From: Obrimoposthia wandeli
Taxonomy: Eukaryota
NCBI GenBank assembly: GCA_977020255.1
Contig: CDROCS010003739.1
Location: 1-64,000, forward strand
Length of the DNA stretch: 64,000 bases
Direction of reading: 5' to 3'
Part shown: piece by piece, positions 5,262-7,737 of the stretch
Numbering within the stretch: the first letter of the stretch is position 1
How the letters are laid out: every line of letters starts with the position of its first letter
Program-made: the position numbers and the translations under genes
Notes under the pieces: model-generated
Told to the model about the DNA's origin: nothing
Seen by the model: only the letters and a program-made list of their open reading frames with translations
The model's database searches: none

Positions 5262-5849
5262 ATGCTTAAGAATCCTGTTCAGCTTCGCGTCGAAAAACTA
5301 GAACCATGGCAACACCTGACTTTTATGGTCTCGCTGTGTGAGCGTATGTACCCGAATTTTGCGTTATTTTGTGAAGAAACAAAATTTGCAGAAGCGCAAA
5401 AATACCGTGTGATCGTAGACAGTATTTGGGAAATCTTGACAGTTAAGAATGCCAAAATTAACTTCGAAGGTCAGCTAGAAAGATTAGAAGATTTGGTGCC
5501 AAGTGCTGCTGATTATGATCTTTATGCGGTACACCCTGCGATTGATGCTTGTGTCGCACTTGCTGATCTACTACATGCCATGTTAGATCGCGATCTGATG
5601 CTTGAGACATTAGAAAAGATCAGTAGCATATCTGCAGAAACGGTTGCCGATCTTGAGTTTGCTCAAACGGGTATTGAGATAACAAACGAAAACCAAAAAG
5701 ATAACGAAGCCGTTTGTGAAGAATGGGATGTCCAGTGGGCTATTTTCCGTGCGCTGAAAGAAGCAGATCAACGCGATATCGAGTTGATTAAAAGCCTACG
5801 TGAAGAATTACGTGATGAGCAAGTCAGTAATATTGGCATTGCGTTGTAA
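5262..5849 (+). CDS. yjaG: DUF416 / YjaG family protein
   Basis: MLKNP..LEPWQHLTFMVSLCERMYPNF, VHPAIDAC, EEWDVQWAIFR. Lies near hupA as in enterics. Confidence 0.9.
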   Translation: MLKNPVQLRVEKLEPWQHLTFMVSLCERMYPNFALFCEETKFAEAQKYRVIVDSIWEILTVKNAKINFEGQLERLEDLVPSAADYDLYAVHPAIDACVALADLLHAMLDRDLMLETLEKISSISAETVADLEFAQTGIEITNENQKDNEAVCEEWDVQWAIFRALKEADQRDIELIKSLREELRDEQVSNIGIAL

Positions 5850-5885
5850 ATCACGATAGTCATGAACATGTGACTGAGCAATATT

Positions 5886-5913
5886 AAAAAAGGAGCCTAA
5901 TGGCTCCTTTTTT
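5886..5913 (+). terminator. yjaG terminator
   Basis: aaaaaaggagcc-taat-ggctcctttttt. Confidence 0.85.
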
Positions 5914-6197
5914 ATGTTTGGTTAATAAGAAATAAAGCGTAATGAATGACGATACATCCGGGCAAGATTGCTTTGATGTAAACTTGTTAATCACCAGTTA
6001 AGTGTAATATTCCAATTGGTAACATATAAAGCAGTTCAATTAACTGGTTGTTGGTTCTTATTTGTTCCAATCGACTTATTTAATATTGTTGCTTGAATTG
6101 TGATCGTAAAGGCGTTTATAACTGGACGTAATCGATAAGGCATTGCCTTGTCATCTTAACTATTAATTACGTCATTACTTGTCGTGTAGGAATGAGC

Positions 6198-6299
6198 ATG
6201 AAAGCATCCGCTTTTTTGAAAACCGTCAATAACAACAGCTACCTTGCTGTTAGTATTCGCGTGCTCCTCTTACTCTCTCTGAAACTCATTCGGGGCTGA
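6198..6299 (+). CDS. Putative branched-chain amino acid leader peptide (33 aa) upstream of brnQ
   Basis: MKASAFLKTVNNNSYLAVSIRVLLLLSLKLIRG*. SD-like AGGAA upstream. LLLL run plus V/I codons and a C-terminal RG, as in leuL/ilvL. Below the ORF-track size cutoff. Confidence 0.7.
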   Translation: MKASAFLKTVNNNSYLAVSIRVLLLLSLKLIRG

Positions 6300-6414
6300 C
6301 AGGCTATATCTTTTTTCTGTCGGCTTGTGAAGAAGCTGGCAGGGTAATATTCGACATTCAAGTTCCCTTCTCGTTTCCTCCAAGCTTAAACAAACAGCTG
6401 TATCGAGGAACACC

Positions 6415-7737
6415 ATGTCAAATACACCAGTGCTAAGTGCACGCAATATTGTAGCGTTAGGTTTCATGACTTTTGCCATGTACTTAGGCGCAGGTAATTT
6501 AATATTCCCTCCTTTTTTAGGCTTTCAAGCTGGTGAACATTTCCTATCGGGCATGACGGGTTTCCTGTTAACCGGGGTGGGGCTGCCTGCTTTAGCGTTG
6601 ATTATCGTCGCTTTAGTGAAAGGTTCAGATAACCTGACTGCGGCTTTGCCTCGTCCGTTAGCGACTAGTTTTTGGGTAATGGTGTTCATCGTGATTGGGC
6701 CTGCATTTGTTATTCCCCGTGCCATCACGGTGGCGTATCAGTTCAGCTTTGCGCCATTTATTGGTGGTGACGTGTTAGTGCCGTTCTCAATCGCGTTCTG
6801 TGTTATTACTATCTTGTTCTCATTGTTTCCGGGGAAATTGGTCGACACCATTGGTAAATGGCTAACTCCTGTTTTATTGGCTATTTTAGCCGTTATGGCA
6901 GCTTTTGCGTTCTTGTTTCCTGCCGGTCAAGTGATGCAGGCGAAAGGTCCGTATGTTGATGGTGCATTGGCAGAAGGCTTGACCCAAGGCTACATGACGA
7001 TGGATGCTTTGGGCTCGATTGGGTTTGGTTGGGTAATTTTCCGAGCGATCAAAAGTATGGGAGTGGAATGTCCGAAAGCCACTGCCAAATATACCTTCAT
7101 TGCAGCAGTGATGTATGCAACCGCGATGGCTGCGGTGTACTTGTCGCTGGCTTACATCGGTTCAACCAGTGCTGATTTAGGAACAGATTTCACCAATGGT
7201 GGTGAGATCTTGACGGCATTCACTAATCACCATTTTGGTGTGTTCGGCACCATGTTGCTGGGTTTAGTGATGATATTGGCATGTTTAACGACCGCTATTG
7301 GTGTGACTACTGCGGGCAGTGAGTTTTACAACCGTACCTTCTCTTCAGTGTCGTACAGTCGTAGTGTATGGGTAACGATGATTTTGGCGGGTTTAGTTGC
7401 CAATGTGGGCTTGGATCAGTTATTGGCAGTGACATTACCAGTCGTTGTCGCATTGCACCCGATTGCCATTGCGTTGTTGATGATTGCACCATTACGTCAT
7501 CGTATCGCACCGATTGCAGTATTAATGACGGTGGCGATAGCTTTGGTTTTTGGTTGTTTCGATGCCGCGCATATCTTGGGTATCATGCCACAAGCGTGGG
7601 ATGTTTGGTTTACGCAACATGTACCGTTGTACCATTATTACGCAGGCTGGATTGTTCCAACGGTCGTGATGCTGGTGGCTGGCTTGGTTATGACACATCT
7701 TATCAAGAAGCCAGTGCCTGCTACGGTGAATGCTTAA
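6415..7737 (+). CDS. brnQ: Branched-chain amino acid:cation symporter (LIVCS)
   Basis: LGFMTFAMYLGAGNLIFPP, GYMTMDALG, LACLTTAIG, about 12 TM helices. Confidence 0.95.
   Translation: MSNTPVLSARNIVALGFMTFAMYLGAGNLIFPPFLGFQAGEHFLSGMTGFLLTGVGLPALALIIVALVKGSDNLTAALPRPLATSFWVMVFIVIGPAFVIPRAITVAYQFSFAPFIGGDVLVPFSIAFCVITILFSLFPGKLVDTIGKWLTPVLLAILAVMAAFAFLFPAGQVMQAKGPYVDGALAEGLTQGYMTMDALGSIGFGWVIFRAIKSMGVECPKATAKYTFIAAVMYATAMAAVYLSLAYIGSTSADLGTDFTNGGEILTAFTNHHFGVFGTMLLGLVMILACLTTAIGVTTAGSEFYNRTFSSVSYSRSVWVTMILAGLVANVGLDQLLAVTLPVVVALHPIAIALLMIAPLRHRIAPIAVLMTVAIALVFGCFDAAHILGIMPQAWDVWFTQHVPLYHYYAGWIVPTVVMLVAGLVMTHLIKKPVPATVNA

Follow-up and report, generated by a model that had tools for sequence, protein, structure and literature searches.

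The window analysed here is a 64,000-nucleotide (nt) stretch of DNA from the Obrimoposthia wandeli assembly GCA_977020255.1 (contig CDROCS010003739.1, positions 1 to 64,000, forward strand), and our subject is a short leader open reading frame (ORF) with tandem leucine codons that precedes brnQ, the gene for a branched-chain amino acid transporter. Specifically, brnQ (6415-7737) encodes a LIV-II family protein of 440 amino acids that matches Pfam Branch_AA_trans (PF05525) with an E value of 1.2e-116 and shares 36% full-length identity with E. coli BrnQ, and its ATG at 6415 is served by the Shine-Dalgarno (SD) sequence GAGGAA at 6405-6410, referred to below as region 6. The leader ORF (6198-6299) consists of 33 codons (MKASAFLKTVNNNSYLAVSIRVLLLLSLKLIRG) and a TGA stop codon at 6297-6299, and its ATG at 6198 lies 5 nt downstream of the leader SD (AGGA, 6189-6192, reading AGGA(A) to 6193); a second in-frame ATG at 6192 overlaps this SD and has none of its own. 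The leader, brnQ, their predicted promoter, regions 1-6 and the spacer described below all lie on the forward strand.

The putative regulatory codons of the leader (6264-6281) read Leu-Leu-Leu-Leu-Ser-Leu, encoded as CTC CTC TTA CTC TCT CTG, such that four tandem Leu codons (6264-6275) are followed two codons on by a fifth, and a Val codon (6261-6263) and an Ile codon (6255-6257) stand directly 5' of the run. CTC is the rarest Leu codon in the window (6.6% of Leu codons), and attenuator leaders typically use rare regulatory codons. A preliminary description of this DNA had proposed that the leader is a ribosome-mediated attenuator tuning brnQ to the charging of Leu, Ile and Val tRNAs, and the leader SD, the 33 codons and the run CTC CTC TTA CTC on which it relied are all present in the sequence. 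Occasional gene calls cover the leader ORF in V. campbellii, V. alginolyticus and V. parahaemolyticus, always as a 'hypothetical protein', and the three leader peptides scanned against Pfam and NCBIfam matched no family.

Conservation and coding character of the leader

A scan with the BrnQ protein, taking one genome per species, yielded 67 loci, mostly from Photobacterium and Vibrio, with the remainder from Shewanella marina, one Shewanella metagenome-assembled genome (MAG) and three distant genomes. The window is closest to Photobacterium frigidiphilum (97%), followed by P. profundum and P. indicum (both 95%). In 63 of the 67 loci, brnQ is preceded by a small ORF that ends about 90-155 nt away from it; this ORF is missing in front of the three distant BrnQs (32-37% identity) and of one probable Vibrio paralogue. 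The N-terminal two thirds of the leader diverge in sequence and in length and its end is conserved as (L)LLLLSL-x-LI-[RQ]-[GS]-stop, with a run of three to five tandem Leu codons in all lineages. Among 21 representative lineages less than 80% identical to one another, the leader frame contains no stop codon and is open in every one; the two alternative frames carry 44 and 19 stops and are open in 3 and 9 of the 21 representatives, respectively. Nearly every lineage has an in-frame ATG (rarely GTG) at a distance of 66-105 nt 5' of the conserved Ser codon, an SD of the AGGA/AGGAGG type precedes the leader start by 4-7 nt in nearly all of them, and the leader stop codon falls in region 2 of the structure described below, or two codons 5' of it, in all lineages. 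Conservation of the leader across Photobacterium and Vibrio, which the preliminary description had put forward as a check, thus extends to ORF, SD, start, frame and Leu run, and also to two Shewanella loci. On this conservation, a chance origin of the leader and its hairpins was rejected.

The Vibrio locus without a leader belongs to Vibrio variabilis (locus L055, upstream of 3001); its BrnQ is 68% identical, its upstream region has neither a Leu-rich leader nor the conserved strands, and it is probably a paralogue under different control. A second brnQ-family gene also occurs in P. profundum SS9 (PBPRA0564), in a different neighbourhood. The start of brnQ itself varies, the N-terminus being longer by five codons in the P. 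profundum group: the ATG of most other species (ATG TTA AGT GCA CG) aligns with GTG CTA AGT GCA CG at 6430 of the window.

The element is specific to brnQ: of the 16 matches to its core sequence in an exact-pattern scan of metagenome contigs, 15 stand in front of brnQ and the remaining one falls by chance within a different gene. The upstream region of E. coli K-12 brnQ contains no Leu-rich ORF, and the element is therefore not shared with enterics.

The nucleotide sequence of the Leu codons in region 1, the first strand of the structure, hardly varies between lineages (CTC CTC CTG CTC TCT CTG), third positions included. Since RNA pairing largely explains this near-invariance, the likeness to leuL ('LLLL...RG') drawn in the preliminary description is superficial. 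The two codons directly 5' of region 1, which no helix constrains, encode Leu in many lineages by CTG, CTA, CTT or TTG; the synonymous changes anticipated for the Leu run were thus found at positions outside the helices. In the clade of the window, in addition, a change from CTG to TTA retains Leu and breaks one pair of the 1:2 helix. Ile and Val codons also stand beside the Leu run, at no fixed positions (V-A-A-A-I-L-L-L in Vibrio and V-S-I-R-V-L-L-L-L in the window). Of the three amino acids first proposed as signals, only Leu has a conserved run, and we regard it as the main one.

Third-position invariance would suit an untranslated RNA or DNA element, recognized by GcvB with Hfq, by CsrA or by another protein, in which the ORF and Leu run are by-products of CU-rich strands. 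Repression of brnQ by GcvB is reported for Salmonella/E. coli and for V. alginolyticus (PMC9299463, PMC9409037), and CA-rich stretches occur downstream of the leader (6390-6398 in the window; AACACCACAUAC in Vibrio). We nevertheless hold this explanation to be very improbable, because an SD and an in-frame start are retained in essentially every lineage despite the divergence of the N-terminus, stops are confined to the two other frames, synonymous Leu codons occur outside the helices, the CTG-to-TTA change keeps the amino acid at the expense of a base pair, and the stop codon is placed precisely in region 2. Control by GcvB could, moreover, coexist with an attenuator.

Only marginally less improbable, in our judgement, is a leader that is translated without sensing anything, either as a constitutive upstream ORF setting the basal level of brnQ through ribosome-driven unfolding or coupling, or as the source of a small functional hydrophobic peptide. 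The existing gene calls and the hydrophobic C-terminal half of the product are in keeping with it; however, the N-terminal two thirds are poorly conserved and the hydrophobic stretch falls short of the length of a membrane helix. Nor would such a leader explain why three to five tandem codons specify a substrate of the downstream transporter using the rarest Leu codon, or why the run directly precedes region 1 of a four-strand alternative-pairing layout and continues into it.

As a separate observation, the full-length minimum free energy fold, a single and unreliable 300-nt prediction, pairs the leader SD (GUAGGA, 6189-6194) with Leu codons (UCUUAC, 6268-6273). Leu runs of the CUCCUC type are inherently anti-SD-like, and the leader could therefore limit its own initiation.

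Helices from the Leu run to the brnQ Shine-Dalgarno

Between the Leu run and brnQ, overlapping strands can form five helices, which were assessed on an alignment of 48 distinct leaders (alignment A1). Region 1 (TTACTCTCTCTGAA, 6270-6283) spans the third and fourth Leu codons, the Ser codon and the fifth Leu codon and pairs with region 2 (TTCGGGGCTGACAGG, 6289-6303), which holds the leader stop codon and pairs alternatively with region 3 (TCTGTCGGCTT, 6316-6326). Region 3 can instead pair with region 4, positions 6333-6343 of a stretch (6327-6345) that reads GTGAAG AAGCTGGCAGG GT and includes the 3:4 loop. Regions 2 and 4 are near-repeats, each complementary to region 3. The 1:2 helix appears in the RNAalifold consensus, where pairing reaches 97% over the inner five pairs and three of these show compensatory changes (CG/UA, GC/AU and AU/GC), the 2:3 helix is 98.7% paired, and the 3:4 helix is 96.9% paired with both sides changed at two pairs. 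In their predicted pairing, regions 1-4 are arranged in the classical four-strand attenuator layout.

Both stems named in the preliminary description are present in the window, namely GCTGACAGG (6295-6303) with TCTGTCGGC (6316-6324, one base off the 6317-6325 first noted) and the competing GTCGGCTT (6319-6326) with AAGCTGGC (6333-6340), and the covariation it had asked of them is seen as compensatory changes in conserved helices. Its statement that a U-tract terminator is lacking was likewise borne out. The 3:4 hairpin is not an intrinsic terminator, in the sense of a G+C-rich stem with a U-tract, as no U-run follows it in any lineage (the window has GGGTAATATTCG there and Vibrio GGGAACACCACAT). 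A terminator scan of the window found none between the leader stop and brnQ, and scans of two other loci found nothing after the leader. We also considered the 1:2 helix with the U-run at 6311-6316 as a terminator and rejected it, the U-run beginning 8 nt past the helix and being absent in Vibrio. In an Rfam cmscan of 5800-6600 (E <=10), no family fell on 6190-6415 except for a 13-nt chance match, and the Leu_leader covariance model (RF00512) was not matched.

The four-strand module is linked to the brnQ start by a fifth, pyrimidine-rich strand. Region 5 (TCCCTTCTCGTTTCCTCC, 6364-6381) includes TTTCCTC(C) at 6374-6381, complementary to the brnQ SD, and the preliminary description had indeed noted that the core TTCCTC (6375-6380) can pair with GAGGAA (6405-6410), both of which are in place. 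When the sequence from the 3:4 loop to the start codon was folded for each lineage with and without region 4, region 5 was predicted in most lineages to pair with region 4 together with the six-base 3:4 loop if region 4 was available, and with the brnQ SD if it was not. The whole 6327-6345 stretch can thus engage either region 3, through region 4, or region 5. RNAduplex recovered 4:5 in all 21 representatives without a shift in register, and in most of these the part of region 5 used in 4:5 includes the SD-pairing stretch. On these models, 4:5 and 5:6 are mutually exclusive. Region 1 and the 4:5 link to the SD were both absent from the preliminary description and are added here.

Sequence comparison indicates that the 4:5 helix co-evolves. 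Native 4:5 duplexes have a mean energy of -15.5 kcal/mol, compared with -12.5 for between-lineage swaps (permutation p about 5e-5). Alignment A1 was not fitted to this structure; it shows 82.5% pairing over the main helix of 14 pairs, 8 of which have changed in both strands (among them GC/AU at 94:155 and AU/GC at 104:145). The clearest co-changes, in which substitutions in the loop or region 4 are matched in region 5, come from P. ganghwense, V. furnissii, P. aquae and the Shewanella MAG.

Two side observations concern these strands. A further strand, region 0 (CCTGTCAG, 9-17 nt 5' of the leader ATG), has the same sequence as region 3 and can likewise pair with region 2, at energies of -16 to -19 kcal/mol in V. 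furnissii and many lineages of Photobacterium. It was seen upstream of the leader SD at loci L022, L042, L038, L008 and L007, is weak in the window (ACTTGTCG, about 6176-6184), and is absent in the V. harveyi clade and Shewanella. Given this patchy presence it was rejected as a core strand and treated as a lineage-specific accessory that could hold the untranslated leader closed. In one metagenome contig (L075, 2-60), region 2 is fused to the sequence that follows region 4, with the 2:3 loop, region 3 and the 3:4 loop missing; the junction matches recombination between the near-repeats 2 and 4 and, lying at a contig end, may be an assembly artefact.

Folding states and proposed regulation

In V. 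owensii (L020), the predicted helix energies are -13.0 (1:2), -14.6 (2:3), -16.6 (3:4), -18.4 (4:5) and -11.0 kcal/mol (5:6), and the combination 1:2, 3:4 and 5:6 is favoured when region 1 is free, compared with 2:3 and 4:5 when it is covered. Masking region 1 in this species raises the probability of 2:3 to 0.98 and that of an unpaired SD from 0.39 to 0.93. The corresponding values for the window are -6.4 (1:2; z -0.4), -13.3 (2:3, hairpin 6289-6326; z -3.7), -15.7 (3:4; z -4.9), -11.8 (4:5; z -0.8) and -9.2 kcal/mol (5:6; z -1.9). The 2:3 and 3:4 hairpins of the window are beyond chance. With region 1 masked, the two states of the window are about equal. Between forced states, mean SD accessibility rises from 0.32 to 0.56 across the 48 sequences; because these are related to one another, the nominal significance of the rise is to be read with caution. 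The switch is thus modelled as thermodynamically clean in Vibrio and marginal in the window's own clade, and the window copy is among the weaker examples of the relay. Folding that mimics a stalled ribosome, along the lines envisaged in the preliminary description, accordingly gives a clear switch in V. owensii when region 1 is masked and no predicted change at the SD in the window.

Taken together, the conserved ORF, its Leu run and the competing helices make it reasonably probable, in our view, that brnQ is controlled by a ribosome-mediated Leu attenuator whose output is access to the SD rather than an intrinsic terminator. Under this model, a transcript would begin at about 6130 and its 33-codon leader would be translated. 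If Leu-tRNA is plentiful, the ribosome would reach the stop codon inside region 2, and region 3 would therefore pair with region 4. Region 5 would then be left over to pair with the brnQ SD, keeping brnQ untranslated, and release of the ribosome would allow 1:2 to re-form, locking the off state, in which the untranslated C-rich RNA would probably also invite Rho-dependent termination. Conversely, if Leu-tRNA is scarce, the ribosome would stall on CUC-CUC-UUA-CUC(-UCU-CUG) and cover region 1, such that 2:3 would form as it is transcribed, before region 4 exists. Region 4 and the former 3:4 loop would subsequently pair with region 5, the SD would be left open, and BrnQ would be made and import Leu, Ile and Val. 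The more specific proposal is tentative, and we would give it slightly less than an even chance: that a six-strand relay without a terminator, in which stalling on rare CUC codons opens a ribosome-binding site (RBS) about 130 nt downstream, operates in Vibrionaceae and represents a previously undescribed gamma-proteobacterial class of amino-acid-sensing translational attenuator that serves uptake and not synthesis.

Several results weigh against this model. RNA pairing alone could account for the near-invariant Leu codons. The 1:2 and 4:5 helices of the window are no better than those of shuffled sequence, so that their support comes from the family and not from the window sequence alone, and the predicted SD accessibility of the window is the same in both states (0.26 versus 0.28). 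The 5:6 helix has no covariation signal across the family, because the brnQ SD is almost invariant; in addition, 5:6 pairing is weak in the P. phosphoreum clade (-2 to -4 kcal/mol), and the anti-SD is located elsewhere in the P. angustum clade. Equilibrium masking of region 1 produced a clear shift to 2:3 only in V. owensii among the 21 representatives, with slight rises at L016 and L035. A purely thermodynamic switch was rejected, as masking fails to switch most sequences, and the decision would therefore be kinetic and made during transcription, as in classical attenuators.

A kinetic decision fits Rho termination as an output better than a purely translational one. The main alternative, conceivable if unlikely, is accordingly that the same Leu-sensing leader acts primarily through Rho-dependent termination, with SD sequestration secondary: the spacer downstream of region 4, perhaps together with the CU-rich Leu run, would be a loading site open to Rho when 3:4 has formed and blocked when the 4:5 helix or a stalled ribosome covers it. 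The spacer (6346-6404), a candidate Rho loading site, is C-rich and G-poor in the window (C 27%, G 12%) and in the family (mean C 32%, G 12% over 21 lineages), no intrinsic terminator follows the leader, the equilibrium fold is static in most species, such that a co-transcriptional decision would suit termination, and leader peptides acting through Rho are established for tnaC in the tna operon and mgtL at mgtA. However, the pyrimidine bias is not independent evidence, since 4:5 and 5:6 pairing need the same bias, and a purely Rho-based device would have no need of the conserved complementarity between region 5 and the SD or of the clean SD switch in Vibrio. Within the model of SD access, the C-rich spacer and the kinetic decision make Rho termination a likely reinforcement.

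Known systems and flanking elements

Leader-peptide attenuation is the textbook control of gamma-proteobacterial amino acid biosynthetic operons and is nearly always described with an intrinsic terminator. The brnQ leader resembles the classical attenuators (leuL-leuABCD, ilvL, the ilvBN leader, trpL, hisL, thrL and pheL) in its short ORF with its own RBS, its tandem cognate codons with a rare regulatory codon, its overlapping 1:2, 2:3 and 3:4 helices, and a stop codon positioned such that a terminating ribosome covers region 2. By contrast with them, its 3:4 hairpin has no U-tract and is not an intrinsic terminator, strands 5 and 6 would relay the signal to an SD, and the target is an importer and not a biosynthetic operon. 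Judged from its strands, the element has a classical sensor end with an SD-sequestering relay as its predicted output.

This output has counterparts elsewhere. In mycobacteria, polycysteine leaderless small ORFs act as amino-acid-sensing upstream ORFs that unmask a downstream RBS (bioRxiv 10.1101/834739). As predicted for brnQ, RBS sequestration is prevented there when a ribosome stalls at consecutive codons for a single amino acid, and no terminator is involved. The mycobacterial ORFs differ in being leaderless, acting on a single duplex and belonging to another phylum and another amino acid, whereas the brnQ leader would use a three-step relay (2:3, 4:5, SD) with about 130 nt between stall site and RBS. 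The drug-inducible ermC, cat and cmlA leaders likewise free an SD when stalling in the leader re-pairs downstream strands, as predicted for brnQ; however, they stall in response to an antibiotic and a specific nascent peptide, not uncharged tRNA, and have a shorter hairpin relay. Like tnaC-tnaAB and mgtL-mgtA, the brnQ leader combines an ORF with a C-rich region downstream and no intrinsic terminator, although tnaC reads free Trp through its nascent peptide and not tRNA charging, and the involvement of Rho at brnQ is suggested by base composition. The actinobacterial LEU element upstream of leuA is an upstream ORF whose Leu run pairs with the leuA SD at the base of a pseudoknot, an arrangement whose authors doubted ribosome sensing (PMC1262725). 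It shares with the brnQ element CU-rich, SD-complementary Leu codons and the lack of a terminator; unlike in the LEU element, the partner of the brnQ Leu run is region 2, and pairing with the SD is left to another strand.

Other modes of brnQ control are on record, namely T-boxes and CodY in Firmicutes (PMC6123439, PMC5794164), the GcvB small RNA (sRNA) in enterics and V. alginolyticus (PMC9299463, PMC9409037) and, in a Shewanella regulon study that covered six classical attenuators, predicted regulation by TyrR (PMC3223726); no brnQ leader peptide is mentioned in any of these papers. T-boxes, too, respond to the charging of tRNA, by binding the uncharged form, whereas CodY is a protein repressor and GcvB an sRNA. 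We found no description of a brnQ leader peptide in the literature compared, which did not include the 2004 comparative work on proteobacterial attenuators (PubMed 15135544).

If the model is correct, the brnQ element couples a classical sensor to another output, a hairpin relay to the SD, possibly assisted by Rho, on a transporter gene. It would extend control by tRNA charging to branched-chain amino acid uptake in Vibrio and Photobacterium, where Firmicutes use T-boxes, and would imply that attenuator searches based on terminators miss a class of elements. It would also provide a compact natural Leu-responsive translational switch, present in tractable species (V. campbellii, V. parahaemolyticus, V. 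alginolyticus and P. profundum), and allow the small 'hypothetical protein' ORF to be annotated as a leader peptide.

Upstream of the leader-brnQ unit, a strong intrinsic terminator (5885-5914) lies behind a DUF416 gene whose last base is at 5849. The terminator has a 13-bp stem flanked by an A-run and a T-run and is potentially bidirectional. The weak Rfam sRNA matches in the region (STnc50, STnc40 and others) all correspond to this terminator hairpin. An AT-rich spacer of 280 nt separates it from the leader SD and contains a predicted sigma-70 promoter (6093-6122) with a -35 box TTGAAT (6093-6098), an 18-nt spacer and a -10 box TATAAC (6117-6122), which a consensus promoter scan missed because the -10 box ends in C. 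The promoter block CTTG(T/A)...GTTTATAAC is conserved in Photobacterium and S. marina and has the counterpart GTTAGGGTA in Vibrio. The transcription start site (TSS) of the leader-brnQ transcript is predicted at about 6128-6131, which places it 5' of the leader and not downstream, the position that the preliminary description had set against its own reading. In close relatives, low-depth metatranscriptome contigs run from about 6124-6148 across the leader into the first part of brnQ, and 5955-6133 is covered by none of them. These contigs do not define 5' or 3' ends and agree weakly with a TSS around 6130.

The stretch from the predicted TSS to the leader SD contains a hairpin whose stem covaries (6126-6173 in the window; L054, 2744-2762; L020, about 2750-2785). 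In the window this stem (GACGTAAT...ATTACGTC) has no T-run; in several species a T-run follows and the score is terminator-like, as with CACCAAGG...CCTTGGTG CTTTTTTG in Vibrio. This hairpin is a candidate 5' stabiliser, pause site or extra attenuator. Within the spacer between region 4 and the brnQ SD, the CA-rich stretches (AAACAAACA, 6390-6398 in the window; AACACCACAUAC in Vibrio, L020 about 2941-2952) resemble targets of the GU-rich R1 segment of GcvB and are possible GcvB sites by sequence. Finally, two elements stand 5' of the promoter: a dyad, AGCAGT-N7-ACTGGT (6031-6049), which in P. angustum is a perfect palindrome (CAGTGA-ATA-TCACTG), and a conserved block, CACTTATTT(T)ATTTTG (6065-6085). 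Both are possible transcription-factor or UP-element sites, through which brnQ may also be controlled at the level of transcription.

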